Part shown: piece by piece, positions 1,846-23,400 of the stretch | How positions within the stretch are numbered: the first letter of the stretch is position 1 | Layout: each line of letters starts with the position of its first letter | NCBI GenBank assembly: GCA_000708835.1 | Contig: DF237014.1 | Coordinates: forward strand, 62,001-126,000 | DNA length: 64,000 nt | From: Klebsormidium nitens | Lineage: Eukaryota > Plantae > Klebsormidiophyceae | Direction: 5' to 3' | Made by a program: the position numbers and the translations under genes | Notes under the pieces: model-generated | The model's input: only the letters and a program-made list of their open reading frames with translations | The model's database searches: none | Told to the model about the DNA's origin: nothing

Positions 1846-1949
1846 GCTAAGTTTCTGCTACTTGACCATTCATTTGCAGCATTGGGGCCGGGCTCTGAAT
1901 CCGAGACAGAGCTTTTGAAAGCTTCGTGGCGCTGTTAGGAGTTTTTGAA

Positions 1950-4900
1950 ATGGCAGGAAGGCAACTAGCTTTGGGCTCTATTCAGCACTCTTTGCAGGGC
2001 TTGAACATAAGGTTTAGGGGTGGCGTTTGCCACCAGCGGATTCATCAATGCCCCCAGCGTCCAGCTGCCCCAAGAGAGAGGCACAGAGGTCACAATGCAC
2101 ATGCCGACTATGAAGCGCTCCGAGCAAGTCCTCTTCAGCATCAGGTGACCAGAATCTTGGAAGTATGCTCAAAAAGTTCAAGCCTTGGCCGACTCCAGCG
2201 ATACACAACCAACCGATTTGCGACATGTTCCTCCATGAGCCATGCAAGCGCGCGACACTCCTTACCTTCCATAAGTATGTCAAGTACTGCGCCAGATATT
2301 GTCGAGACAGCGGCTTCAGGTGGCGTTAGTGAAAGCCCTGACATGTCAACTGACAGCAGCGCTGGAGAACTCTACTCATCATTCAATTTTCATAAGGACA
2401 AAGGTGGCAGCCCGCCTTCATTGCAGCAGGGAGCATTGTACCTTGTTGGAACTCCGATAGGCAATCTGGAGGACATCTCATTCAGGTTAGTCTCTGCATC
2501 TTCAGTAATTGGATGGTCACCCTTGGTTATATTGGATGGTTTGTCTTACTCACAGTGCATAGTGGTGGTATGATTGTAGCAGCTGTGTTCGGGCCAGTTC
2601 CAGAAGTCCTTCCATCACAACTTCCAACCTGCAAAATCAGGGACCGACTTTCTCGTGGCTGGAGGGGACAAGTGCCCCACCCAAGGTGGTCAGAGCTACG
2701 TCCGTAAGGTCTGCTTGGGGAACTGCGTATGGTGTCTTGCCACCATACTCGCTTCAATCCTGCTACTGCAAACCATACTCGCTTGAATCCTGCTACTGCA
2801 AACCTGCGCGGATTCCGAAGTAGCCAAAGGAGAAGAGCTATTTTCCCCATGAGTTGCTCATGCCCTCTTGATGGGCACTCAAGTGGATCAAAGCTCAGAT
2901 TCAGAATGTTCTTTGATATCGAGCCCTCTATACGGAGAAGTTTCAAAACCATGAATTTACAGTAGTGTTTGGTCAAGGGCCGCTGTGGAAGCCCCAACTC
3001 TTCTGCGTCCAAGCGCGACCGAAGGCCTTGGTGAACTATAGCCTGTATGAGCTTCCAAATGTCTGTCTTTGTTGGTTGTAGGGCCTTACGTGTGCTTAGC
3101 TTGGCTGATGTCATCCTGGCGGAGGACACACGGCGGTCAAGCAAACTGCTGAGCTACTTCGAAATCAGAACACCGATGATTAGTTTCCATCTGCACAACG
3201 AGCAGTCTAGAGAGGGGGAGGTGCTGCAAAAGCTGCGCGCGGGCAAAGTGGTGGCGGTGGTCTCGGACGCAGGTGTGTGTCGTTAGCACCCAATTGCACA
3301 CTTCCCCCTCCGAATGAAGAGCCATCCCAATCCCCTGCAGGGATAGGCTCTGCGGTGAAAGCTTTCCCATTCCTTCAGAGATTATGGACAGATTCGTTTT
3401 TCTACCATTCCTTGGATCCTCGGGTAGCGGGGGTGAGGCTAAACAAGAAACGAGGGGGGTGAAAGCTTTTCATATTGCAACCAGTCCCTTTACATCAGAA
3501 GATCAACGTGGATTACGCTTGTTGCTCAGGCTTAGGCCAGAAGTGTTTAAGCAAGAACTTAGGAGAAAGGAGAATCTTAGGAGAAAGGAGAATCAGTTCC
3601 TATCAATAAGATGATCGTTTTTGTGTTTTCCCCCAACAAATTATCAATGCCATCGAATAGAAGCCTACTTAGTCTCTGATCGATGTTCTTTGACCGTCAC
3701 AGGTATGCCAGGCATCAGCGATCCAGGGATGGAATTGGTGAGAGCATGCTAGTGTTGAACAGAATTGCGCTTGGCTTGCAGCAAGTCTTATTGGGCAGCG
3801 AAACGCGTTGGGTTTGATTGGAGATTGGAAATCATTGCTGTGAAAGGTAAGGTTTGTGCAGTATTTGGACAGGAGATATCCTAGTAAATTATGTTAAAAG
3901 CTGCAACATTAGGGCGCACACCTCACATTTTCGCTGCGCAGGTGGAGGCTTGTGTGGGAGCCAAGATTCCTGTAATCCCCATTCCTGGCCCATCAGCCGT
4001 TATCACGGCCTTGGTGGCCTCAGGACTGCCAACATACGAGTTCACTTTCCGTGAGTCAGGTCACCCTGCTTTGCCATCCCTCCTGGAAGCCTTACGAAAT
4101 CTCGTGTTCCATCTAGTTCATGATTGCTCTCTGCTCGATTCTACCATGCCCTGTATATTCGACAATCATCTTTCACTGATTGTGATTGTGTGAGGTTCAG
4201 ATAAGTCGACCTAGCCGTTTCCTGGCTTCGGGTTGAACTGATGACGCTGCAGCACACGTGATGAGAGCAGCTCGTTCATGTGTCGAGAAACTCAGGGGCC
4301 GGTTACCTTGAGCTGACTGCCTACTTGAGCATGCTTCTGAGAAATAAAAACGTTTGCAGTTGAGAAGGCTAGGTAGGCCTACACTGCAAGAACTCTCACT
4401 TTGTCCAAGACGGAATTCGGATCCGAGGTCCGAGTGAATAGGATCCAGAGCCCGAGCTCTTTCTCCGTGCAGTCGGTTTTCTGCCGCCCGATAAAGCTGC
4501 GAGGAGAAAACGCTTGGCGTCCATGAAGGATAGCAAGCCCACCCAGGTCATGTTTGTTGGGCCCCACAAACTAGCCGCATGCTTAGCAGATGCTGCTGAC
4601 GTCATCGGCCCAGAGCGCCGGTGTGTTGTTGCAAGGTGAGAAGACAGGTTCTCGGTTAAGTTGTGGACTTCGACTGAGCCCCTCTAGCTAAACCTTAGAA
4701 AGCGCCCGTTGTAGGATATTCACAATCAGCCAGTGTCTTTCACTAGACGTGTATTGCCAGAATCGCTATGGGAGTCCCGCAGAGGAGTCGCGCAGAGGAG
4801 TTTCAACCGTTTTGCTTTCCGTGTTTCGTGGACACTTGACTGGCGGGAAACAAGGTCAAGTAAGGCGGACTGGTTTGCTGAGCCACCTGTCGAGGGTGGC

Positions 4901-5583
4901 AAAACCCGGATTGTCGGTGACGCTAGAAAAACGCGGAAACTCTGGTCGTTGTGGGATGCCGGACGCTTCGGGAAGAATGGAAACAACCGACGACGCTGCC
5001 GAGCCTGAAAACCAGATTTGATTTAAGACCCGTAATCGGACTCGCAACCGCTCTTCGTTTCAGGCTTGCCTTTCAGAGCCGACCCTTTTCTAAGATCGGC
5101 GTCTCGACAAGCGGGATTGGCGTCGAGGAGTGCCTGCGGGCCGAGTCGGCCCATGTCTGGCTCAAGCTGTCTATGTCTGTCAGCTGACGTAATATTGCTG
5201 CTCCTGCTGACAGGGAGATGACGAAGGTGTTCGAGGAGTTCTATCGAGGACCCCTCGGCGAGGCAGCAGCCGCCTTCAGATCGCCAGACCCGGGAGAGGC
5301 ACCCCAGGCGGTAAAGAGGAAAAGACCCGAAGCAGTCGTCCGTGGGGAAGTGACGCTTCTCATTGAGGGTCATCGGAAGGAACACGAGGAAGAAATCTCG
5401 GAAGATGACATAACTGCCCAACTGCTGGCGCTCAGAGAACGGGGGGCTTCGGTTTCCGACGTGAGGACTTCGCTCCTTACAACCTACTGTGAAAACCCTT
5501 TCGTGGGGGCTCGTCATTTGGTGGCTCGTTCTTCAGAGCGTTTCAATCGGGAAGCTGTGCTTTGTGTTCGCTTTACGAGCTAG
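1950..5583 (+). CDS. rsmI: RsmI-like 16S rRNA (cytidine-2'-O)-methyltransferase (tetrapyrrole methylase family) with a probable plastid transit peptide; 6 exons
   Basis: Exons 1950-2485, 3082-3272, 3703-3737, 3942-4050, 4473-4635, 5214-5583 are GT-AG and in phase. Motifs: LYLVGTPIGNLEDIS, ILAEDTR, SFHLHNE, VSDAGMPGISDPG, PIPGPSA, GFLP, AREMTKVFEEFYRG, RGEVTLLIEG. Confidence 0.93.
2742..2804 (+). repeat. 30-bp tandem duplication in RsmI intron 1
   Basis: ACCATACTCGCTT(C/G)AATCCTGCTACTGCAA x2 plus ACC. Confidence 0.85.
3558..3593 (+). repeat. 18-bp tandem duplication in RsmI intron 2
   Basis: CTTAGGAGAAAGGAGAAT x2. Confidence 0.85.
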
Positions 5584-7214
5584 ACCTGTGAGTTCTCGGA
5601 TTGAATGCTTTGATAGCAAGCCCGGGGCGATACTGAAAAAACGTTGTTCCTGGCTGACGTCAAGGATACTGTTTTACAGCAAGATGAGGCTCGTTGATGC
5701 GTTTCCCTCGTGTACCATCTAATGGAATTCCATTGTGCTCCTATGTGTAGGCCACACGCGAGATTGTCGAAGCTTCAGGTTTGCGCAAGAAGAAGATCTA
5801 CAGGTTGGCGCTCGATCTCTGGAAAGACGACTGATATTGAGAGAGAATTTCGGTACGTACGACAGCGAAAAACATGGTTAAAGTGCTGCTTCTCGAAGAA
5901 GAGCAATACTCGGAAGCTTAGGAACCTCGATGGAAGCCCGGCCCTAAGTCAAGGCCTTTGATCTGCGATTCCGTTGAAAGTCATCTGGCCGTGCTTATAA
6001 TGTATCTAACTGAAGCCTGCTGCGTGGCATGCTACGTTTGTGAGTTCCAAATTGAACTTGATATATCAGGCATATTATACGTTTCACGGCCCTAATGTGG
6101 GTGCTCGCCTTTCTCGATTTTGGCCCAAGTACTGTGCAGTGGCAATCCCGACATGTGCCGTGATCCTTCCATCACTCTTGTTGTGGCGCTATAAAGGATT
6201 CGTTCGAAGAGGTTCGAGGCATCGCTATGTTTGTGTAACTGCATATGCAACAAAGATTGTATGACGGCGAACCCCTACTTCGTATTGCGTAAATAGTTTA
6301 CCTGACAGATGAGCAAAGCGTTGATGCCCGCAGCCAGACCGCCTATAGCATCATATCACATATGGATCCGCGGCGTAGCTGCAGAGGAATGTCTCATAGT
6401 TTTCGATATGAGAAAGTTCTAGTCACCATATGCATTTGCTCACATTATTAATCAAGATATCTCTTCATGGATCCCGGAGTCCGCAGGCATGCGGCAAGGA
6501 ATTAACGGATAGGTATGCTGGCATTATAAGCTTTGGGCGGCCGTGCGTATAAGAGGGACGTGACTGCATGCGGGCGCATGCTACGTTCACTCACTGAGAT
6601 GATCACATGCACCGGAACATACACTTGCATGAAAGCGAACCAGCAGCACAAGCCATGATAAACTGCAGTTGCAAGAGGCCATAATGCAGCGCATTTTCCC
6701 CTTGCAATTGTCCACTTGCAGTTGCGGGATGAAGACATGGCTCGCCGAGCCGAATAAGCTCGCCTCTTGCGTGTGAGCTCCAGGGCCGCGCACAGTTTAC
6801 ATGGATTTGTAAGGCCCAACTCTGGTACGGTGCGAAGCCTTTCGGCTCGCTGCCGCGCATTGAAATGCCAGCATGCCTAGGATATGGGAGTCACGTTGTT
6901 CAAGACTGCGGACTCCGATGACAGCCTACTGTCAGTGTAGGTGGTAATAGTCGCAAATTACTGCATATGGCAGGACTCGCGTACTTCGATACACCGCGAA
7001 GCTTCATGAAGCTCAAAGCCAAGCTTGAAGTGAACAGTACCTCTATGTGATTCAAAAAAGCCTTTGAACGAGCACCTGATGTGCGATGATGGATCCAGAA
7101 GGCAAGTCTATCAGATGCAACATGTATTGAGTGGATGTCGCCTAGTGCTAATGCATTCAGCACTCACTCTCGAGATACGAGTTCCAGATTTGTTGAGGTC
7201 AGTTTCACCGACCT

Positions 7215-9750
7215 CTACCTTTTGCGAACCCTCATGACCCGAGCCCTACCTATGTTTTCGATAAGAATCGCCTGAGGAATCGGCCTCTTTCTGCAACCAG
7301 AATCTTGAAGGTTATCCTGGGTTGAGTTCTTTGTGCCGGTTGAAACTTTCTGCCTCTCGTTCAAAAGCTCAGATTTAGGCTCTTCGTTCTGCTCTTTCCC
7401 GACTTCGACACATTTCTCTTTCTCCGAGGACTGAGCTTCCAATCCTTCAGCTCTCGATCCGCCTGGTAGATTGTCGTCAACTGCGTCCACCCCGGACGTT
7501 TGCGTAGCCATCTCGACCGTCTCGTTGTGGTCTGAAAGTTTCTTTCGAATGCCGTCTTTGAAGAGTTGTGCTAGGTCCTCATCGACCTCCGCTTTTTCCT
7601 TCACCCACGGCCTTACAACCGGCATAGAAGGCTCCGCATTGATGAGCGGTTGTTCTTTGGAGTACTTTTGGGTTTGGTGTGACTCTTTCGTCTCAACATC
7701 CCAGTGAACGTGTACTGAACGGCTAGTCTTTTCTGCCAAAGGATTTTCTTTCAACGCCGATTTCAGATGAATTGCTTTTGTGGGATTTGGGAAGGTCTCA
7801 GGCGCTTCCTCCTGCCTTTCCAGCTCGTCCTCCCATAGTTCCGTTGACATTTTGGACCTTCTACTGTTTTTCAGGAGAGAGGCTGGACCGGTGTGGTTGT
7901 TTTGGTGGTGAAGCTCTGAACCACCCATCGTGACATGGACGGCACGGATAGAGTCTTTTGGAATCTTGTTGGCCTGAGAAGCTGTTGGCCGTAAGCTCGC
8001 CTTATTATGCGGAGGAAGACCGGCTTCGAAAGACTGCGAAAAGAGAAAATGATTGCTTTCAGCACACTTAACTTAGTGGAAGAAGATAAGAATCTGCGTA
8101 GGTCGTCCCCTTCATTGAGAGTTAATCATCTGCGTTAGTCCCTACATCAGCTGTTACTTAAACCGTACCTTCGCAACTATGGACGCCGTGTCCGGATGGT
8201 GGATGTTGGTTCTGAGCATTCCAGCCACTTCTTCGCGGAGGGCCTTGAAGAAGCTCTTCGTCCGCACTGCAAATCGCTGCTGAGATGTCATGCTCAGTGC
8301 GTACATCAGCACTTCGGAATTTGTTATGCGTCAAAGCGTTGGCCGCATCCTATCAGCACTATTGACGCTTGGAGGTACGGACAAGGAAAAGAACCTCAGC
8401 AGGCGACTTTTGCCTACCTTGCTCCTTCAGGACTACCCTTAGAACGCTTCGTACATCTTTGTTTTCTTCCTGTATGTTTTTGAGATCTTCTTGCAACCGT
8501 TGGCTGTCCTCATCGTAATGCCTGTCTCCTTCTTCGATAAGCCATTGAGCTCCTTTCATACGTCTTGCTTGATCTGGACGGTAACGTAAGACAGAGCGTC
8601 GGATAGTGGAAACGAGAGACAAATTAAAGGAGGGAAGTATGCATTTTCGGCATTTGGATCAGTGCTTTACAACGTGGCAGACACCAGAGTCTAACAGATT
8701 TTCAGGGATATAATATTCATCAAAGCCTTGAGTTGGCCTGCAAAACCCACCTTCAAGCTGTTTTTGCATGTCAGAAACTTTGCGATCAACGGACGAAGCG
8801 ACAGCTGACAGCTTAAACTCCCTGCAAAGGTATCGAATTCAAGATGAACCACGAAAACAAATGATTAGCCACTGGCAAATTCTTCCAGAAGGAAGGTTAT
8901 AACTCACTGCAGGCCTGTCAAGGTTTGAATTGAACTGTTCTTTAGCAAAGCTAGCATAATTCATAGGATCATGAGTGTCTTAGCGAACTCACATCTTGTC
9001 CTCGATGCGCCGTTCGAGGGCGGCGGACTGATCTTGCAAGCTTTTGGTCACCAGACCGACTGCTTCGTGAAACCTGACTTCATCCTTGCTCTTTGCCTGC
9101 TTCTGAATCTTTTTGATCGCCTCAGTGATTGCTTCGACATCGCTGCAACATGCACAGGTCCAGAAGGTCAGATCTTGAAAAAACCCGGACAAAGAAGCAT
9201 CTGGCTCTTCATCGAAACACTCAGGAAATGCTCAAGTTTCTCGGATGTTTGCAGAATGCATAATACAGTATGTACCCACCTGCAGATGTCGAAAGTCTGA
9301 TCTTCTGCACGTTGTTGATCACCTGCAAGTCGGAGTGGAGCTCAGTGACATGTGTAGCCTACAAGACCAGATTGGAGACCTAACGTACCTAAACCGACTC
9401 AAAAGCCATTGAAAGAAGTTTCCTATGGTAGATCTTCACACACGCTCTTGCACCTGAAGACAAGCAAGAACTTAAGTCGAGTTACCTGGTACACTCTTGT
9501 GGCTGCGTCTATCCATCACGTACTTCTTTTGCTCCTCCTTTTCATTTTCGCTCACAGGATTTTCTGGTGTCTCTTCTCCGTCCAATTGTTGCCTGCGTGA
9601 ATGGCGTGGTGACTGCCTGTCTGCCTCTTCATGATTGCTTTCGTTGTCTTCCATCAAGACATCTTTGCCTTCCATCGCTTTTAGAAGTCTGTGCCGCCGT
9701 GCAACCCTCGAAAATCGTCTATCTATCCGCGCTGCATCAGCTTTCGACAT
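7215..9750 (-). CDS. ~533-aa coiled-coil protein, candidate ASY4/SYCP3-like meiotic axis subunit with a long disordered C-terminal tail; 7 exons
   Basis: Exons 9750-9486, 9322-9280, 9142-8993, 8821-8751, 8573-8418, 8266-8169, 8033-7215 are GT-AG and total 1602 nt in frame. The central heptad region FDICSDVEAITEAIKKIQKQAK...EAVGLVTKSLQ...LERRIE resembles my recollection of the ASY4 coiled-coil start. The gene model is more certain than the family call. Confidence 0.6.
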
Positions 9751-11014
9751 TGCTACTATCGTCCCCGCTCACTCAATGAGCCAGAAGGTTCGTTCTGGTT
9801 CAGCAGCGGCGTCTCATCCTTATCTGTGTCTTTTAAGTTTTACCATACGTAGCGCTTCGCTTGAAGCAAAGCGCCGGCTACTCTGATAGGCTTTGTCAGT
9901 TTTACATTGAAATGAAAATTTGAGCAGCAGCCGCAGAGGAGGAGTTCATACCAGTGATGAACCTCGCTTTACCATTTTCCAGGCCTAGTTATTCTTTGGC
10001 AAACGACTTGGCAGCTCTGCATAAATTGCAGGAAGGCGACCTGCACGCGTAGATTCAGGGGGCCGAACCTGAAGAAGATGAAGTTGTAAGATGATCGGGC
10101 TCAAGGGCAATGCCGGGCCATGCCAGGCGATGGCATGCGGCCGTGGACGAAACCTTCGAGTCGATCAAAGTGGGACTTGCAGAGCATTCCCAAGATCATA
10201 TCCATGGCCGCGACGTCGTGGCAGTTGAAGGCTTCTTGGTGTAGCGCTGTCCTCAGCTGTACTTGCGTTTCTTTAATCTCAAGAGCTCTCGTTCTCGGTT
10301 CTCATCCAGGAAAAGAAATGAGAGCCCCTCAGCGTTTCCCTAGGCTTCGATGCCCACCCATGCCCACCTGGAACGATACGAAGATAATAGTGCCACGGTT
10401 GGTTATCATATAACATTCATACAGAACTTATGCCCGGGGAAGTGGTAGGGTTAGCTAGGACGTGGTTAGGGTGGGTTCGGTGCGGAGCGCGCAAAATTTT
10501 GGTTGGGGTTTCATAAGCCAGGCCTCTGTACCGGGTGCTTTCGAAAATCTAGTTGATTTGTGTGATACAGAATAGAGTAACGGACTTATTGCAAATATGA
10601 TAGGTACTCGTACTCGTTATTTTAGACCCTGTATGGTCAGCTTAGTCCGTTAAGTTGTGAGCTTTCGAATTCAGGTCAAGCCTGAAGTGTTTAAAAAAAG
10701 AGAACAAGAATCTTAGAAAAATCCAACGCGATCGAGTAGGAAAATGTAACCTCACGAGTTTTGAGAGCATTTTAGATCCCCGCAACGCATTCCTAGTGCA
10801 ACGCAGTTGACTGAGGTACGAAATGAAAGCTTCAGTGCCAGAACGTCCCCCGCGAGGATGTGCTTTCCTCTTGTTTAGAACTAGAACAAAAAAGTAATCA
10901 GGGCCCGCTTGGATTCTGGCTTGACAAGCCGCGCAAGCGAGGAGATAGCAGCAAACTTGGCATACTACATCTTGACAAGCCACGGTAACGGGAACGATCA
11001 GAAAGAGCGGCCCG
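9751..11014. promoter_or_regulatory. Putative bidirectional promoter between the ASY4-like and ASY3/SYCP2-like genes
   Basis: 1264 bp between divergent start codons. Contains TAGGGT telo-box-like motifs near 10447-10471 and a palindromic TTTCGAAA at 10539-10546. Confidence 0.45.
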
Positions 11015-14000
11015 ATGGAAAGCAGCGGAGAGGATGTTGAAACTGGCGGCTATGAGGATGTTGTTGAGCTGATAGCAGCTGCTGAGGCGGACGAAGAACT
11101 TCCACGGGCAAGCAGGGACCTTGTTAAGAAAGTGCACATAGTTCTTGAAGGTGCTGTACTGCGCAAGAGGAGTATCGACGCAAGCCTAGCCAAAAGAGTG
11201 TTGAAAGTGATTCGAGCCCTTCTTCCCTCCAGCCTTAGAGAAGTTCTTGAAGAAGAGACGGTCGAAAAGCTCGGAGACATCTTTGATGCTCTTTTCAGGC
11301 CAGAGAAGCAGACCGGAACGACCTTTGCTGTCTTGGGGGACGTTCTATACACTGTGGAGGATCTTTGTGATACGAAAGAAGGTACATCGAAATACAAAGA
11401 CTAGGCTGTGCTTGGGAGATTCGCATGCTTCAAAGGAGAATCTGCGAATGGCAATATTGTGGAGGAGGAAAGATATGACGTACTGCTAGACTCACTGGTA
11501 CGTTCTGGGTTAAAATTTGCTGATGGAAGCACGTATCATTGAAAACTTGAGGTGCGATGCTTCTTGTTCCATCCAGCTTAAAGTGGACGCTTACATTCTG
11601 CAGGCAGGGAGAAGTGCGGTCCATGCTTCATCCCCAGACTGGTCAGACTGCAATATGGTAGGCTTCCTTTCAAAGTACGACGGGCGGCTATTGAGAGCTT
11701 ATCAGCCATCACAGAAGGAAGTGCTGCCAATCTGAAGGAGCTCCTGAAGCTCGAGAAAGATTGGTAAGGTCCTACCATATGCAATACCAATTTGAAGACA
11801 CCTGCATTAGATGAGCTCAAAAATGGACTGAAAGAGCTGCGGGAAGGATAAAAGACCGCTTCTAGATTCGACTGGACTTTTCACGTCTCAAGATAGTGCC
11901 ACTGACATAGATTTGTGATTTCTGCAGCACCATTCTCTTCACTCAAACACTTCCGAGCTGTGGGGATTTCCTGACCCAAGCAAGCATACTTGGTGAGTCC
12001 TATTAACCTTTGGTCTAGAGGATCTGAGCATTCTGACTTGAACGCGAAAACCGTTGTACTGAAAAGCGAGCTTTTAGTTTTCCAGCTTCCTGTGAAAGGT
12101 ACAAGTATCAAGACTTGGGGTGTGATAATCCGTTCTCATCTGTCATCTCAAGCTGGTCCGCTATTCCATCTTACATACGGATCAAGGTGATTGCAAAGTT
12201 GGCATGTTTACCATCAAATCATCCTTTCTGCAGAAATACTGTACCGGATCGTGCGGAAGCAGTCCTCTTTGCTTCAAACCGGTTTCTGCGGAGTGGAAAA
12301 ATGGAGAAAGTCTCTAAAAGAAGAGTTCTTGATGATTGCGAAGAAGCGGGATCCAGAGCTTTACAAGGAAATTAGAGCCTTCCTACTCTCGTACAACGCT
12401 TCACTAGGAGCAGCTCGCAGGTGAGTGTGAAGCAGTAGGACCAATATCGAGTGCTTAGCCTGATATCGTTGTTCAGATCCAACACATTCTTGCCTGTTCA
12501 TCATTCTCCAGGGCTTGGCAAGTGATGTCTCATGCTGTTTTAGGGCAATGGTTGTGAATCCATCCCAGGATTTTCAGACCAACGGGTTTATCCTCCTCAC
12601 AGCGTCTTTTCGGTCGAGTTCGAGAGGATCGTCATAGACGGAAATGAAGCGACGGCGGTGACGGACAGATGGCTGGATTTTGGTTCCAATCACGTCTCCT
12701 TCTACGCTTTAAATGAAGAGGTGCGATTTGCAATCTTTCAAAGGAATCAGATAATCAGGTTCTCAGGCACTGCATGTTTGGATTGTGCGGCATAATTTTC
12801 AATTTCGCAAGCCTGTGTCAGACCTAAATTGACTGATTTTTGATGCGGAGACAAGGGTCTCGACGTCTGCATGGCTTACTTGATAAACACAGAAAGCATA
12901 GACGCGCACGAAGAAATATTTCATCCGTTCTGCAGGACAAACGGCTGGAAGCAGACGAGGAGGGGGCAGCGCTTGTCGACCTTCCTTACGGGAGAATACT
13001 GGACCTAAAACGTTCGTGAACTTTTGATTTACAATCAATGAGATTTTTGAGAGTTGGAATATGATTATCAGTGAGAGAAAACTTCAAACGTCTTCATTGA
13101 ACACACTGCTTTCTTCTGAGGTCTCTCGAGAGGATACTGATAGACCTTCACTCCACTCTTCCCGGAAATACGCGAGACTTGTCTGCAGGTTCTTCTGCAA
13201 CAACTCTCAGCCTGGTGGCAAAGTCGGCGGCGGCCGGGCTCGCAAGCGCGCAGGTACTATCCGTATCCAATTCCGTCATCTGCTTTGGAAGTGAAAATGC
13301 TTTTCCTTCGTTTAGGAGGACTTTGCAAGCAGAGATACATGTTTTTCTCATCCCCTACACAGCAGTACGGCTTTCCTTCTCGTTTTCACGACACATCCTT
13401 CATATCATGCAGTTCTCGCAAAACGCCCAGTCTACGAAGGAAGTTAGTATCGAGATGAAGGACAAAGGTGAGTAAGTACATGCTCCATTGTCTTTGGGTA
13501 CCCTTGCCGTCAATTTTGCAGCGTGTACTCTGCGAGTACCGTGTTCAGAAAGAACGTACAAAAACTTGCGAAAGACATCTTTACTACAGAGAAGAGTTGC
13601 GACACTCGTTAACGATTTCATTCGTACTGGCTGCGCAGAGATGGTCACCGTCGAGCGAGTCATCTTGCCATGGCTGAACAGCAAAAACAAGCAGGTAGGT
13701 CAATCTTGACCTGCAAAAGTGACATCCTTTCGGCTTATTGAGCAGCTTCGGAAGAGGCGTTTCACCTCATGAGACGCGGCTAGCTCCTGTTGTAACCTCA
13801 ACGCCGCCGAACAGAGCCGGAAAATGTCCCCTATCACAGCGTGCTATGGTTTTCCCTTTAAGAGCAAACACTTGCTGGAGGTAGATTTGCAAACTATAAA
13901 ATGCTTAAGTCTTGCACCTGAAGGAGATTAGACTGCCTGCCTCTTGTGGCTCGGCTGTGCATGTTAACATAGTACAAACTTGGTCCAACTTCTTCTTGAG

Positions 14001-17000
14001 ACGGCTGCTCTCATTGCGCATTGCCCGAGATGTAGTACTTTGCAGGCCTTCCCTTCGCTGCAATCAAAAGGACTCGGTCGAGAAAACTCTGCATCATCAT
14101 CAAGGGCACCTCTCAACAGTGGAAGCATCGTAGGCTCAAGAAATCAGGGCAGCATAAGGAAAGCTTCGATCGGCATCCTACCCGGGAGGTCTGCGTCGAA
14201 GGTTAGCAGACTGATAGAAGTTTAAATCCAGTACCTCGTGAGTTTCAAGAGCTTTTGCCTTGCAGATCACAAGATATCCGTATGTGGTATCGTCATACGG
14301 TTTTCTCATCCTCCGGTCGATTTTGTGCAGTGTTCACAATTGAAAGGACGAAAGAGCCAGCTCAGTGACAGCATACTAACAGTTCTCCATTTTGCAGGAT
14401 TTACCTCAAGAGCTCGTCAAGGGGCCGCTCCACCTTGTCAGCACACGAACACCCGAACGTGCTGACAACAACAAAGAAAATCTTCCTCCAAACAATAATA
14501 ATGCTTTATCCTCACCACGGAAAGAAGGAGGCAAAATGACGACCAGACTGGACCCCGAGCTACATAATTGGGAAGATGTATTCAGACAGCCTCAAGGACC
14601 TGAAGACCACAGAGGTGCGTCGAACAAGAAGCGGCGCGTGTTTGCACTGGAGCCTTTGCATCTCGAAAGTTTGGTCTATGATACGTTGATACGTTGTTCT
14701 TAATAAGATTGAGCGTCTGATCGCTCGAGCTAGCTTCGCGCCTGTCCAACTGATATAACCTTATCTTCGAACTTACTTCAAGATCGTTCAGGTAGTGCGT
14801 CACGTGCAACGCTGAGGTGCCTTGGTAGCAGAAGTTGCACTCTACAGGTAGATTTTAACCTCTCTGATAAGCTGAAAATTTGAAGAATCTTTTTTGCAGA
14901 GACTCACTGTACGGCTTTCCAAGAAACAAGAAACGACCGGAAAGAGCTGACGCATCAAGAACACTCTTGCGGTGACAGAAGCGATATGCCGATCGAGATG
15001 TTGCGACAGCAAGTCCGAGGGCTTCAAGAGAAGGATAAGTGCAGACCAGCAGCAGGTGAGAATGACGATACACCCCTTCTTTCGGGCATCGTTGCGGGTT
15101 TCTTCCTGATCTTGGAACCTTTTCTTCATAGTTCTAACTAACCTTTACTGTCCAGAGCTTTTCGGAGGCGTATACCATACTTCTGCTTTCTGGAAGAATT
15201 GAGCCAGGTTATCTAAAAACAGGCGAAGCTTGCAAGAGGAGAATCCAGTCAAGCTTTCTAAACCAAAGAACATGCTCGTATTACAGAGGATGCGGATGGC
15301 CGAGGCAAAAAGGGAGGTGCGAAAAGGAGGGGCGAAGGTGGGGAAAAAGCAGATGAGGCAAACAAAGAGCTCTCAGAAAGGGATAAATCCTCCGCTGACG
15401 ATGACGACAGTACGAGAGCTGTAAATATCGGCAAGGATGCCGGTGTTGCAATCAAGAGCCACAGGGCTCTTAGGATTCCTCCAAAGCAGAACAAAGTCGA
15501 ATCTTCTAGCCCCGAGGGTGGGAAGAAGCCAGAGAAGGAAGCTGATACTGGGAGCCCGCACAATATCGGCGCAAAAGGCGGAGGAAAGGACGTGGCCGCA
15601 AGAGAGATGCAAGCGGCAAAAGTTCCTAAGGAATCTGTTAACCAGAAATACATTGCTAAGGGCAAATCAGAAGGGAGAAAAGTTGACAGAACGAAGGAAA
15701 ACAATCATGGCGCTTTCGAGTTCAAAGCTGATGAAGGCAAAGACAAAATAGAAGCGGAGAAAGAAGGCAGACTGCCCTCCAAAAAGCAGGGCGGACCAGC
15801 TAAACGAGGCGCAAACGAAAAGGAGGCAGTCCGGAATGACGGAAATGCCAACGGACAGCCTGATGATGAAGAAAAGGATCAGGTAAGATTCCTCAGGCTT
15901 TGTAATTGGGCATCCAAATGTGCGATAGTAAAGGGAGTCAAAATGTATCAAACTCTTCTTATTCCGAAGCGGGACAAGATGTGAAATTTTGTTTATGATT
16001 TCGAACTGCAGATCGACCATGGTAAATCCTACAGACCTACATTGGGATCCGACCCGATCGAGACGGACAGCGAGGCGCGTGGATTTGAAGCACAACCCAA
16101 AGCTGTCAAACGCGGAGCAAAAAGAGGGTGGCGGTCCGCGAAGAAAACCAATGACAAGCAGAAGGCCCGCCCGTCAAATGCGCAGAAATCGAGAGCATCT
16201 CAATCTGAGGAGGGCAAAAACGTAAGAACTTCACTCTAAAAGCCACCACGAGCTCACGACCTGATCCCAACGAGTGAATGCATCAAAAGGTGATCAGAAT
16301 CTACTAGCATTTTTAGTCTGCTGACTAATCTCTGAGGCAAAGGTTCTGAGAAAGCTTTCACAACAACTTTCAAATGAATCCTGCTTTGAATCATGAAGAT
16401 TCCGATGTTATCCCTAAGCACGTTAAACTCACTAACAGCCGGAAGGTTGATTGTTCTTGAACTCAAGGCTTCAACTACAGTAAGAATGCGTAATCATTAC
16501 CATCATCAACCTGCAGGAGGACAAAGATAAGAAATTGGATGGTGCCGTCAATCAAAAGAGTGTTGCTGTCCGCGCTTTGCAAAGGCGACAAAGTAGAACA
16601 AATCAACCCGACTCCGGTAAGCGGCGTCGAACTGTACAATCCTGTGATCGAACTTCTGCTAGTTCCAATGACGGCCGTAGGAGGGTTTTTTACCGAGCTT
16701 GCAGCTTGCTAGGGTCTGACTTCCTGAAGTGCTGGCTGACGGCTTTCGTACAAAGAACAATCTTTAGTACACAAAGTTGCTTCACCCATGCGATCAAAAA
16801 ATGCTTGCCTAGATCGTGTGCGATGCCACTGTCCGTAACAATAGTGATTCAACGGATTGATCAACCGCCTGTGTTCCGCAGAAGGAGATGCCTTCGACAT
16901 CCTACCGAAAGCTGCTGCGTGTGATCCAGAAAAAGTGAGTTTTGACTGCTGAAAATCACGTCGAGAAGATTGTACTCATGATGGTGAGAAAGTCGCTTAG

Positions 17001-19646
17001 CATTTCTCTGTAAGCGACGCCTGCTAATTGTACTATTTGCAATTATCTGACGAGACTCCCAGGCAACTAAAGAAGAACAATCACATCGAAATCATAGAAC
17101 TTCTCGGACCCTGCAGGGTGATAGTCCACGTACCCCGCTTCGGGGGGTTCAGCAGCGCTCAGAGTCTCCGGCGCCTCAGCTTAGGCGCGACAGCATGTAC
17201 CAGGATGAGCAACAACAAGTTGAAGAAGCCCTGGCTTATCTGCTTGAGGAGGAGGACCCTGATCAGACGAAAGGGAACTCCACCTGGAAGTCGGGAGATG
17301 ACACAACAGCGGGAGCTCCAGAGGCGAAGCTGGACTTGAATCCTGCACGCAGAAAGCCCCTGAAGCTGAAGACCGGGAAGCGGCAAGACGAAAGTGAAGA
17401 CAAGAAGCCCGCAAATTTGGAGGTGGGCTTGCCTGTGTCATCTGCTCTATGATCTTCCCCTATTTCTACAACGAAGGGGTCTTTCGTATAGCGATCACGT
17501 TGCGAGGTAGAAATTGTTTTACATTTGCACTCCTGGACGGTAGCTCTAAGAATATTCTAGGCGATGAAGATGGGCGCGCAGGTTCTTTTCCCTCCGAGAA
17601 GGGTAACATAACATGTGCGTGGTCTAATGAAAAGTTCAATGATCTGATTCCGACCATCAACTTCACTGCAAAGATTCATCTTTTCTGACGCTTCAACCAG
17701 ACTGTGTACAGTTGTCTGCCTGGAACGAAGACCTTCCTGATGCCGGCTTCGACGCACTGGAAGACCCCCCGCTTTCTCCAGCTCTTACTCCAGAAGGTGA
17801 GTAGCCTGGATCAGCTTGGCTCGGTAAAGCTCGTCCGTGATCGACACAACCACTCATCTGTGTGGCTGCCTGATTGTTATGCTTTCGAAATGAAAGAAAC
17901 GTCGACGTTCCACATGCAGAAGAAGCGCCTCTCAGGCTTCTCGCCGACCTCCCAAAGTCAGAGCGTCATTTGAGAAACGCCCGCCGAAATGGAGTCGGCA
18001 CCGAGGTCAAGAGCGCCAAGCCTTCTGAGAAAGAAAAGCCTGCACGCAAAAGTGCCCCTGCCCCAATTGACACTCTTCTACTGGAAACAGCTGCAGTCGA
18101 GGAAGAGCTGTTGGGAACGCCTGGTAAGTAATAGATTCGTCCACAAATTTAACACGTTTGATACGTGTCTCTCGTAAAAACATGTGATTCTTGATCCAAT
18201 TTTCAAAGGCTGGTAGTTGCACCCGAATGTGATCCGACGAGCATACGCTTACAGCGGGCGGTGGATTGGAGCCTAATTACTAAAACAGACACTGTCTATT
18301 CATGCAGACGAAGGTCTTCTGGATACGGAAGGAGGGACCGACGAGGGTGGACTCGGAGGGTAAGCTCTTCTTGGGTGGCTTTTGGACCTCGGCAAGTCTT
18401 CTCACGGATCCAGACTTGCTATCGAGGAAGATGAATTTTGTCTTCGATAGCTTGTTCTCGTTCCTCTGGCCAAGCGTTCTCACTGGTTCATGTTGTATGC
18501 AGAGCGGTCAAGATGATTGCCAAGATGGTGACGCAGCTGAAAGGCAAGATGAAGCTACAGTCCAAGAGGAAAGCGTCCAGCATCGTGGAGGATGCTAAGG
18601 AAGCCATGCAGGCGGAGATGCTCAAAGTCCAGAAGAAGGTCAAGAAAGACAGGTGACTTCTTATCCCGTTAACAATCTCTTACCTGATGTCCTGTTGAGA
18701 TCTCGTCTATGTCTCCTTTTCATGTAGGCGGACGTTTTTAAAGATTCCTTGAGTACCTTTATAACTCAGTTAGCATCTCTCTTTTGCAGTGACGAGTGCA
18801 TCCGCGTCTGCAAACGCAAGTTCGGCACAATTGAGGCCCAATTGCAAGGTATGTAAGGAGCCAAACGCACCATGCAATCATACGCTGTGGGCTCCGCGTG
18901 ATGCATCAGTGACCTTTTTCACCGCGGGCTCCACGTGATGCGGGTGGCGTTGAACCTACGCCGTTCTTCCTGACTTGTCAGAATTCCATAGGGAGCAGGA
19001 TAACAAGAAGAAAGACAGAAGTTCCCGGCCGTTGACGTAAAAATGCTGAAATGTCTTGCAGCCCACAGCAAAAAGATGAAGATGCTTCATGACAAGTTCC
19101 AGGCAGACTTCAAGCAACAATTGGACGAGTACGAGAACACGTTTGCGCATATGGACGACGCCAAGGTGGACATGAAAGAAGCGATCGACAAGACGAGTAA
19201 GTGGTCCCGGTCTAGCAACGATCAATTATAGCTTGGTCCTATGCAGAGTCTCGCCTGTCTTTCCCGAAAGGTCGACTCCCTCTCAGCGACTTACAGTGGG
19301 CGAACTTTCTGCAGAAGCTGCTCACAAGAAGTTGTTCGAGCAAGCTCAGGAGAGCGCCACCGAGATCCTTCAACAGACAGAGAAGAAGCTGCAGTCCATT
19401 AACAAGGTACGTAGACCGCTTCTCTTTCTCCTTCAACTATCGATAATTCACGGTATGATCTTCAAATAGTGCAACACAAAAGTCACGATGTTGTCTTGCT
19501 GGAAGCAGGAGGAAAATAGCACTCAACGCAGATATCCTGTGAGTTGCGCTGCTCAGCGCTGCGCATTTACGCCTCACAATTTGTTGCAGGGTGCACGCGA
19601 AATGAAGGCGCTACGTCAGGCCCTAGTCGGTATCACTGCCCTGTGA
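11015..19646 (+). CDS. ASY3: Meiotic chromosome axis core protein: ASY3/PAIR3-like with a SYCP2/Red1-type ARM + PH N-terminus; ~1297 aa, 25 exons
   Basis: Exons 11015-11381, 11604-11763, 11928-11992, 12234-12420, 12603-12720, 12936-13011, 13189-13253, 13413-13467, 13522-13694, 14046-14201, 14398-14614, 14900-15055, 15287-15882, 16012-16221, 16517-16616, 16882-16934, 17117-17422, 17712-17796, 17920-18123, 18308-18359, 18503-18652, 18790-18848, 19062-19196, 19315-19406, 19590-19646 are all GT-AG and total 3894 nt in frame. The C-terminus (GLGGAVKMIA...KMKMLHDKFQADFKQQLDEY...HKKLFEQ...KKLQSINKGAREMKALRQ) matches the ASY3 coiled coil as I recall it. N-terminal GDFLTQASILEILYRI, RAFLLSYNASLGAARSVF and WLDFGSNHVSFY match SYCP2 ARM/PH motifs as I recall them. 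Confidence 0.8.
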
Positions 19647-20465: not shown

Positions 20466-23400
20466 CTACTTTCGAGCGGATTTTTTTGGCCGCCTTTCGC
20501 TCTCGCTGTCACTCTCGCTGTCCGAGTAGGAACTACCCGAGAACGAGCTACCACTCCCCGAATTAGAATAGTCGCTCTCAGAACTTGCACGACGCTTGCT
20601 AGCCCGCTGCGCCTTCGGAGCTTCCTTCGTCACCTTCTTCAAAAGGTCGTCTCCCTTTTCGGCTGCCTTTGCAGACTTCGCTTCGGCCCCGGGCCTACCC
20701 TTCTTCCTCGCAGGCTCGTCATCCGACTCGCTCTCACTGAGCGGCCTCTTGGCCGGAACCCCTTTGCCCCTCGCTCTCTCGAAGCGCTCCTCGTCTTCCA
20801 AGTCCGACTCGTTGGGCTTCTGTCTCTTGCTCACCCCCCTCTCTGGCACGTCCCGGACTGGAGGGCTGTCGGCGCGCCGCTTTGCAGCCGCCACAACGGG
20901 CGCCACTGCTCGCTCGACCGCAGCCTGATCTTCCTCCTCGTCACGGCGCACCCTTTTGACCCGCGCCTCCTCTTCGGAGTCGGACACCGGCCGCCCCTTG
21001 GGCACGCCAGGCGCCGCCTCAAGGCCCTCATGCAAAAGGTCGTCAGGCGCAGCCCTCCCTCTCGCCCCCTCCGGCGCAGCTCGCTTGCGGACCGGCGACT
21101 CGTCCTCTGACGACGACCCGCTCAGCGAGTCGCTGTAACTATCTGAAGACTCCGAAACCGCTCTCTTTGCTGGCGGCTTCTTGGCCCCCTCCCCCACTGA
21201 CTTGCCCGCCCGTCCAGGGGACCTAGACCTGTCCCGTTCGTCTGGAGACAGAGCCTTTGGCCTCCTGCTGGGCACGACCGGCGAGTCTCCCGCAGGCGCT
21301 ATCGGCGACCGGCCCAGAGGCGCGGGCGACCTGGAGCTCGAAGGGCTCCGCCTACGAGGAGGGGAGCGCTCCCTCCTTCCCCCCTCCCGGCCATTCCTGC
21401 CGCGGGCCGGGGACTCATCACGCGCTCCCCTCCTACGCTCATCGTAACCCCTAGGCACTGGCGAGCGCCTCCGGGGGGGGGACCTTGCACGGAAAGGAGA
21501 GGGCCTCCGTCCACGTCCAGGGGGGCTGTCGTGGCGGAACCTCCCCCCCCGGGGAGGGGGCGGACTCTCCCGCCTGAGCCTGCCCCCGCGGTACGGCGAT
21601 GCAGCCCGCCTAGGTGGGGACCGGCCACGCCTGTCTGGAGACAACCTGCGCCTGGGCGGGGGGCTGACGCTCCTGCGGGGCGATCCGGACTCCCTGCGAA
21701 TGTCTCTTCTCGGCGGAGGAGGGATGTCTCTGCTCAGAGACCGATCCCTTCTCGGTGGCGGGGAACGGGTCACCCTCGGATGAACGGCTGGAGAAGGCCT
21801 CCTCTCCACTTCTCTTCTTGGGGGTGGGCTCACGGAGCGCTCGGGCGAAACGACTGGCGAGGCTTCTTTCCTTCTGGGGGGTGTGTCTGCTCTGCGCCCG
21901 CGCTCAGCTGACCTCCCCCTCTTTGGCAGATCTTCTGGGCTTCGGACTTGGGGCCTTGCAACTGCCCTCTCCTCAGTGTTCTTACCCCTGGACCCCTCAG
22001 GTTCAATTTCGGAGGGACTGTCGTGCCTCACTTTCTTCCCGTTGATTGGCGCTGTCGGCGCCGCCGCTCGCTTCTTCTTCCGCAGAGCCTCTCTTTCGCT
22101 CTCAGGGTCGCTCTCGCTCAGCTCGCTCTCGCTCGAGGAGAGCTCTGACTCGCTCTCTGACTCGCTGTCGTAGCGGCCCGTCTTCCTTCGTTCGTCCCTC
22201 CCACGTGACTTCTCTCCCGACTTGGCTGCTGAGCGAGCGTCTTCTTTTCGCCCCTTGCTCTCCTTTCTGCCCCTCCCCTTTTTGCTCCTTGCAATCTCAT
22301 CATCATCCTTCCGTCCCGATCTAGCCTTGCCACTCCTTTCCCCCACTTCCTCTTCTTCGCTGTCGTACCTTCGTCTTTTGTCCGTCCCCGCTCTGCCATT
22401 CTTCGGCTCATCCTCAAGCTGCCACCTGTCTTCCCCCCTGAGTTGTTTTGCTGCCTCTTCCGCCTTCTTTGCTTCAAGGGCCAGCCGCTCCGCCTCTTCC
22501 TCAGCAGCCCGCTTTGCCGCGGCTTTCTTCTCCTTCCTCAGCCTCCGCTCTTCCCTCTCCTTCTGCCGCTCCAGCTCGCGAGCCAAGCGCTTCTTCTCCT
22601 TCTTTTCCTCCTTTGCCTGCAAGAAAACGAGGAATAAATGTTAAGCCCAGTCTTGAGCTTTGAAGTCTATGCATGGACTGATGCAGGCCCCACGAGTCGA
22701 AAAGCAGCCTTGCAAGACTACCTGCAATGTCCGCAGCGCAAAAAAAAGCTTCCAAGAAAATCACCCAATACCTTCTCCAACCATATAGAGTGCCCTGGAC
22801 GCAACCCAGCAGACTGCAAATCTAGACAGTCAACAGCAGCTTGACAAACAGAATGAGCAAGAAGCTCTCGTTCACGGCATACGCAGGCAAACGTGGCCGA
22901 TAGAGGGCCAGATTCCCTTGAGGCGTGCTCACCTTCCGCTTGGCCGCCTTCTCTGCATCTTTCTTCGCCTTCTCCTCAGCCTCCTTCAGTATCCTCTCCT
23001 CTTCCTTCTTCGCTTCTCGCTCTGCAATCCTCTCGAGCTTCTTCTGCTCCTGAAGATCCCGGTCAAACGCCTCACCCTCCCGCACATTCTCAAGCCCCAG
23101 CGCATTCTGCAGGGAAGGAGATGAATCAGGATCCAAGTCAAAAACATGCCAAAAGCGGTTCAGCCAGTAGGCAGGACGCAGCAGAAGATCCGCAATTCAT
23201 TAAGACATGCCTATTCCCGCTCCACATGTAATCCTTTCACCAGCCTCCAACAAGACAACCTCAAATCTTTGCAATAACAAGCAGTTGACCAGATTTCAAT
23301 CTTTTGCTGCTACTTTTGTCAAACACCAAAGCTTGCTCTACCCTCCAACTCTAAAATACCAAAAGTATGGTACTTAAGGCACGCCACTAAACAACCTGCT

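Follow-up and report, generated by a model that had tools for sequence, protein, structure and literature searches.

Here we present an analysis of KFL_000650110, a minus-strand gene that lies head-to-head with the meiotic axis gene ASY3 in a 64,000-nucleotide window of the Klebsormidium nitens genome (contig DF237014.1, assembly GCA_000708835.1; all coordinates are those of the window). The gene occupies 7215 to 9750 and, as rebuilt from the sequence, has seven exons that encode 533 amino acids (aa). Because it shares both an exon architecture and a heptad register with the last exons of ASY3, we consider it probable that KFL_000650110 arose long ago as a partial copy of the 3' end of its neighbour and has since diverged strongly; the copy would have to be old, since no similarity to the ASY3 coiled coil is left. 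Duplication of the ASY3 coil is the origin that Tromer et al. (PMC8131943) infer for proteins of the ASY4/SYCP3 type, and the product is for this reason best read as a candidate axis-core subunit of that type, to which tails have been added.

The coil-only axis subunits SYCP3, ASY4, ASY4L, Rec27 and KKT16 are thought to have been derived repeatedly from an SYCP2-type coiled coil. According to Tromer et al. (PMC8131943), ASY4 in the Streptophyta and similar SYCP3-type proteins derive from duplications of this coil, SYCP3 having arisen by a separate duplication in Metazoa. ASY3(605-793) and ASY4, with predicted coils of ~145 and ~180 residues, form 2:2 coiled-coil tetramers that assemble into filaments with a repeat of ~23 nm (West et al. 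2019). Fast divergence of such subunits causes algal orthologues to be missed. If our interpretation is correct, intron positions can identify coil-only axis subunits where profile searches fail, an early-branching streptophyte acquires a candidate for its missing or doubtful ASY4, and the duplication model becomes directly testable on a duplicate that still sits beside its parent. If it is wrong, KFL_000650110 is an ordinary lineage-specific coiled-coil gene that adjoins ASY3.

The primary evidence is the exon layout. Around exons 2-6 (e2-e6) of KFL_000650110 the intron phases read 1, 2, 2, 1, 1, 0, identical to those around the last exons of ASY3. In order of transcription, e2 (9280-9322, 43 nucleotides (nt), phases 1/2) has as its counterpart the 52-nt ASY3 exon at 18308-18359, also 1/2, which encodes an acidic DEGGLG linker ahead of the coil. 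The first coiled-coil exon, e3 (8993-9142), equals ASY3 exon xA (18503-18652) in both size (150 nt) and phases (2/2). Exon e4 (8751-8821, 71 nt, 2/1) corresponds to xB (18790-18848, 59 nt, 2/1), e5 (8418-8573, 156 nt, 1/1) to xC (19062-19196, 135 nt, 1/1) and e6 (8169-8266, 98 nt, 1/0), in which the helical core closes with KSFFKALREEVAGML, to xD (19315-19406, 92 nt, 1/0). ASY3 then ends with xE (19590-19646), which is entered in phase 0 and contributes 18 aa and the stop codon. All the ASY3 exons are on the plus strand and those of KFL_000650110 on the minus strand.

Under generic phase frequencies the phase pattern would arise by chance with a probability of 5e-4, and under those of ASY3 itself, which are tentative, with one of 2e-3. 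When five other ASY3 exons are drawn at random, their sizes fit equally well in 0.08-0.14% of draws (8e-4 to 1.4e-3). The joint chance for six phases and five sizes is ~1e-6 and stays small when post hoc noticing is allowed for, with the reservations that the null was built on a tentative ASY3 exon list in which some boundaries are provisional and that the parallel was spotted after inspection of the data and not predicted. At other offsets along ASY3 the sizes are nowhere near, and one offset matches 5 of the 6 phases. The boundaries on both sides were set independently of the comparison: those of KFL_000650110 by the deposited model and two orthologues, and those of ASY3 by canonical splice sites, equal exon lengths and ungapped 88-100% aa identity in a related assembly (contig L004, see below), where xA to xE score 88, 100, 93, 90 and 94%, respectively.

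The heptad register follows the same alignment. When e3 is laid on the 150-nt ASY3 exon, 8-9 hydrophobic positions overlap, the best of 49 rotations, and when positions are anchored on the exon borders of four exon pairs, the hydrophobic residues coincide; shuffling gives p values of 0.0001-0.026 and rotation gives 0.001-0.054, the value varying with the residues counted as hydrophobic. Between e4 and xB, RKVSDMQKQLE stands against RKFGTIEAQLQ (p 0.04). The core, ~150-160 residues encoded by e3-e6, is of a length that suits the ~145-180 residues reported for the ASY3/ASY4 coils. A second tie to the ASY3 neighbourhood, which supports the duplicate interpretation, is found in a related species (species C), where the orthologue of KFL_000650110 adjoins the orthologue of a K. 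nitens gene situated beside ASY3.

The plus-strand neighbour, KFL_000650120, is confirmed as ASY3. Its span of 11015 to 19646 (1136 aa as annotated, ~23-25 exons) coincides exactly with the deposited annotation, and the 1136-aa product carries PF20435 (ASY3-like) and PF26290 (DUF8079). Exon xC, which encodes the KMKMLHDKF motif, matches positions 698-742 of 793 of PF20435 by itself (E 7.6e-4). The gene is listed as the K. nitens ASY3 (kfl00065_0120) in supplement 2 of Thangavel 2023 (PMC9957857), and its last six exons and the C-terminus of Arabidopsis ASY3 shown in that paper are collinear (for example, DEGGLGGAVKMIAKMV against DEGLGRAVALFAMAL, and KMKMLHDKF against KMRMIHEKF). The ASY3-like label given to this gene by a first-pass annotation, made from the DNA letters alone, is thus borne out.

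In the pathway that we propose, exons 2-6 of KFL_000650110 would derive from the six terminal exons of ASY3, those for its C-terminal coiled coil, and the copy would later have acquired a first exon of its own and an extended tail at its C-terminus. If ASY3:ASY4 and SYCP2:SYCP3 are a guide, the helical core of ~150 residues would pair with the C-terminal coil of ASY3 to give 2:2 tetramers and, end to end, filaments. The gene model, the ASY3 identity of the neighbour, the common exon architecture and register, and purifying selection on the core are established here; that a duplication took place, that the protein partners ASY3, that it is expressed in meiosis and that the intervening 1264-bp spacer serves both genes as a promoter would be inferences. 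The adjacency of the two genes is more economically regarded as a trace of local duplication than as a selected device for co-expression; two relatives do without it. A more ambitious scenario, which we advance as doubtful, is that K. nitens keeps the arrangement in which a heteromeric axis core was born: an inverted partial copy of the last six ASY3 exons would have come to lie just upstream of its parent, acquired divergent transcription from the parent's promoter region and thereby turned into a co-regulated partner. The locus would then show, in a living species, how SYCP2-type genes give rise to SYCP3-type proteins.

Several results weigh against the duplicate interpretation, in addition to the provisional null and the after-the-fact origin of the layout comparison, and most of them come from sequence and profile searches. 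These were of low power, since the queries were single exons or the deposited 456-aa protein (P0001, which lacks e5); most true ASY3 exons likewise fail to reach PF20435 singly. With E-values admitted up to 10, Pfam returned neither Cor1 (PF04803) nor PF20435 on any exon of KFL_000650110 or on P0001. A sequence search of the PDB gave a chance-level match to SIKE1 and none to SYCP3, and phmmer with P0001 against 1.84 billion representative proteins gave five matches, all of them fragments of the same gene from Klebsormidium-like assemblies. A word search with the core found the protein itself alone. In direct comparisons with the coil of the adjacent ASY3, an exon-wise BLOSUM sum evaluated with shuffles was without signal (z 1.4), and an exon-by-exon hhalign matrix, built on small alignments, had no diagonal. 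Exon e5 lacks (K)M.M(L/I)H.KF, the hallmark motif best conserved in ASY3 and ASY4, and bears a conserved IEEGDRHY element instead, and the core is flanked by 370 further residues that have no equivalent in plant ASY4. The literature also places the K. nitens ASY4 elsewhere, as kfl00034_0400 on a different scaffold (PMC9957857). Finally, in the ASY3-bearing contigs of two related assemblies no copy of the minus-strand gene was found, either in the 20 kb of L004 (10 kb of it upstream of ASY3) or in 5.3 kb upstream of ASY3 in L005, the fourth assembly.

Other searches were equally unproductive: tblastn against the adjacent ASY3 coil gave no signal, a word search with the tail retrieved K. nitens and one relative only, and a scan of JGI metagenomes found no relative. 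A helix predicted over P0001 residues 64-176 (ESM Atlas model) aligns with long helical proteins, these being generic long-helix matches only. The ASY4/SYCP3-type partner proposed in the first-pass annotation is thus partly supported: Pfam, phmmer and hhalign, with exons or P0001 as queries, give it no match in sequence or profile, and what speaks for it is evidence on which that annotation did not draw, an exon layout and a heptad register that copy the tail of ASY3.

These negatives would be expected if KFL_000650110 were an unrelated, Klebsormidium-restricted coiled-coil protein that neighbours ASY3 by chance, its parallels in layout and register being coincidental. We judge this unlikely. 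In its favour, besides the uniform failure of the sequence and profile tests, are the frequency of head-to-head pairs in compact genomes, the lack of adjacency in two relatives, the existence of another gene that bears the ASY4 name in the literature (PMC9957857) and the second ASY3 offset that fits 5 of 6 phases, by which phase runs are not vanishingly rare. Yet coincidence would have to account for a joint chance of ~1e-6 at precisely the place in ASY3 from which a copy of the ASY4 type should come, for a register shared with ASY3, for a coil of the right length and for the second link to the ASY3 neighbourhood in species C.

A different proposal is that KFL_000650110 is a true duplicate of the ASY3 coil that arose independently within its lineage, as did ASY4L of the Chlorophyceae, and is not orthologous to land-plant ASY4; its role may have changed through the motifs of its tails, and kfl00034_0400 would be the real ASY4. 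Recurrent independent duplications of this kind were found by Tromer et al. (PMC8131943), the long tails with conserved short motifs are unlike plant ASY4, and the ASY3/ASY4 hallmark motif is missing, all of which agree with an independent origin, as does the naming of another ASY4 in PMC9957857. However, a recent local copy would retain sequence similarity to its parent, and none was found; moreover, the published ASY4 call was made by PSI-BLAST/HMMER with a coiled coil, and ASY4 is detected only patchily in charophytes (PMC9957857). We accordingly treat an independent duplicate as a possibility, though a minority one, and retain descent from the ASY3 coil, with an ASY4/SYCP3-type role, as the interpretation that best fits the gene.

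Direct comparison with Arabidopsis ASY4 (AT2G33793, 212 aa) shows both likeness and difference. The two proteins have in common a coiled-coil core of ~150-180 residues, an inferred origin from the C-terminal coil of ASY3 and a coil-closing motif (KSFFKALREEVAGML in K. nitens, KTFSILRKTLGSFL in ASY4), and e3 fits the first helix segment of ASY4 without gaps and with matching hydrophobic positions. This last fit was the basis of the first-pass proposal, which quoted a peptide that is encoded exactly by exons 2-5 and aligned it over about 50 residues with an Arabidopsis ASY4 string. The string proves correct (table in PMC9957857), but the ungapped alignment on e3 has 8/49 identities, together with hydrophobic positions matched by eye, which alone is not above chance. 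In contrast to ASY4, the K. nitens protein is 533 aa long, with tails of ~100 and 272 aa, shows no significant similarity to its supposed relative and lacks LH.KF. The genes also differ in placement, those for ASY3 and ASY4 being far apart in Arabidopsis (AT2G46980 and AT2G33793), whereas the K. nitens candidate adjoins ASY3.

With the SYCP2:SYCP3 pair the likeness is in the role that we propose, in which a long ARM-PH subunit is joined through its C-terminal coil by a short subunit made of a coil only (West et al. 2019); unlike SYCP3, the K. nitens protein gives no match to Cor1 (PF04803) or to SYCP3 in the PDB. ASY4L in Chlorophyceae and Rec27 in fission yeast are comparable by pattern alone, as recurrent coil-only duplicates of SYCP2-type genes in other lineages.

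The overall layout of the protein, with a disordered N-terminus, a central coil of ~150 aa and a long tail that ends in a conserved basic motif, would also suit another class of fast-evolving meiotic coiled-coil proteins with disordered flanks, such as those of the Mer2/PRD3/PAIR1 type, a family reported to have gone undetected in charophytes; for K. nitens, PMC9957857 gives no PRD3. With exons or P0001 as queries, no match to Mer2 or any other Pfam family was obtained, however, and such a protein would leave the parallel with the ASY3 exon layout unexplained, so that we regard this assignment as highly improbable.

The gene model itself was established as follows. A word search with the final exon returned a 100% match to the deposited protein, P0001, which identifies the minus-strand gene as KFL_000650110. 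In the rebuilt model AG/GT is present at every splice site, and the coding sequence of 1602 nt gives 533 aa and a stop codon. The first exon, e1 (9486-9750, 265 nt, phase 1 at its end), encodes a basic/acidic N-terminal tail; the translation thus comprises ~100 aa of N-terminal tail, the helical core and 272 aa of C-terminal tail, the last encoded with the stop codon by e7 (7215-8033). The first-pass annotation had already arrived at a 533-aa product with a tail of ~270 aa, which it described as not ASY4-like, and the rebuilt exons agree in each respect, the e7 tail being foreign to plant ASY4.

The deposited model is incomplete and is corrected by this fuller one. P0001 shares e2, e3, e4, e6 and e7, begins at Met26 and joins e4 straight to e6; the deposition is thus without the first 25 codons (9676-9750) and the 156-nt exon e5 at 8418-8573. 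Relatives that carry the gene were available for comparison in two assemblies, L001 (SRR23617307, species B) and L003 (SRR23617210, species C). The start codon at 9750 is kept in L001, where MSKADAARIDRR of K. nitens aligns to MSKPDAERMDRR. Exon e5 is among the best-kept parts of the gene in both relatives (86% aa identity in L001 and 76% in L003), with its splice sites retained, and in comparison with L001 its codon changes comprise 10 synonymous and 7 non-synonymous ones, while 88% of its nucleotides are identical (introns, 59-71%). For these reasons e5 is a real coding exon, though one that may be subject to cassette splicing.

Conservation along the protein is uneven. Core exons e3-e6 are 61-86% identical in the two relatives and the tails 34-61%; e3 retains 86% of its residues in L001 and 71% in L003, e1 retains 61% in L001, and e7 is poorly conserved, with 51% and 34%. 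In both e3 and e5, more of the changes are synonymous than non-synonymous. The helical core of ~150-160 residues is the most strongly constrained part of the protein and is under purifying selection.

Within the poorly conserved e7, three species share short motifs: HLK.ALKE...SR.V.VHWDVE.KE (~7680-7775), VEMATQT, and a C-terminal I.I.N.G.ARVM.V (~7218-7280). The first of these reads RVHW in L001 and L003 and resembles a docking motif of the RVxF type. The conserved short motifs of the N- and C-terminal tails suggest that the protein may have added interactions.

The spacer between the two start codons, 9751 to 11014, measures 1264 bp, exactly as reported in the first-pass annotation, the minus-strand ATG being at 9750 and that of ASY3 at 11015. 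The pair is divergent and, from ATG to ATG, falls within the spacing of about 1 kb by which bidirectional-promoter pairs are recognised, a likeness offset by the absence of the pairing in two relatives. The shared, operon-like promoter that had been proposed would be a purely conjectural feature. Among the sequencing runs listed, none contained this stretch as RNA, and four runs compared with it yielded zero contigs. Neither of the two open reading frames (ORFs) inside the spacer belongs to a Pfam family. Among the papers searched we found none that links ASY4 with a head-to-head arrangement, a bidirectional promoter or synteny, and none that mentions the gene identifiers.

Comparison with the relatives argues directly against a conserved pair. 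In species B, ASY3 is on contig L004, which runs collinear with positions 10994 to 19646 and has a UFD2/U-box gene upstream instead, and the head-to-head arrangement is likewise missing from L005. The arrangement is therefore not an obligate, conserved unit, since ASY3 has other upstream neighbours in these two Klebsormidium-like assemblies. In species B the minus-strand gene is on another contig, L001, where, as in K. nitens, it adjoins the TP_methylase gene, and it stays constrained there without ASY3 alongside. In species C the orthologue of the minus-strand gene is convergent with L003:3676-4029, which is orthologous (74% aa identity over 119 residues) to an ORF at 20466-22622 of the window. 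This layout, seen on short contigs, hints that the block of two genes was inverted or that the locus was rearranged in another way.

The first ~300 bp of the spacer, beside the minus-strand gene, are homologous to L001, in which 302 upstream bases align at 75% before the contig ends at the equivalent of ~10052, and the spacer's segment 10423-10480 and last ~20 bp are homologous to L004. Because L001 ends at ~10052 and L004 keeps 10423-10480, the two species B contigs part inside the spacer, between ~10052 and 10423. The segment 10423-10480, a non-coding block of 58 bp that precedes the start of ASY3 by ~550 bp, is 83% kept in L004:9440-9496, from a relative in which the head-to-head neighbour is lacking; we regard it as a candidate promoter element of ASY3.

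The TP_methylase gene (PF00590, RsmI-like) lies at ~1900-5600 on the plus strand, convergent with KFL_000650110, and this pairing is kept in species B (L001:4200-8340). On the other side of the locus, the ORF at 20466-22622 is on the minus strand, just 3' of ASY3 and convergent with it, and encodes 718 aa rich in RS and KE, with no Pfam family.

The exon model of ASY3 ahead of its coil is tentative, including the boundaries around 12758-12914, 13467-13639 and 14634-16000. From 11015 to 18300 the tentative intron phases are rich in 1 and 2 (1,2,1,2,2,1,1,1,0,0,?,0,1,1,0,?). Within this part of the gene, ~1.17 kb of lysine/glutamate-rich, coding-looking sequence at 14560-15731 has no counterpart in the L004 orthologue; it was either gained by one ASY3 or lost from the other, in the disordered central part of the product.

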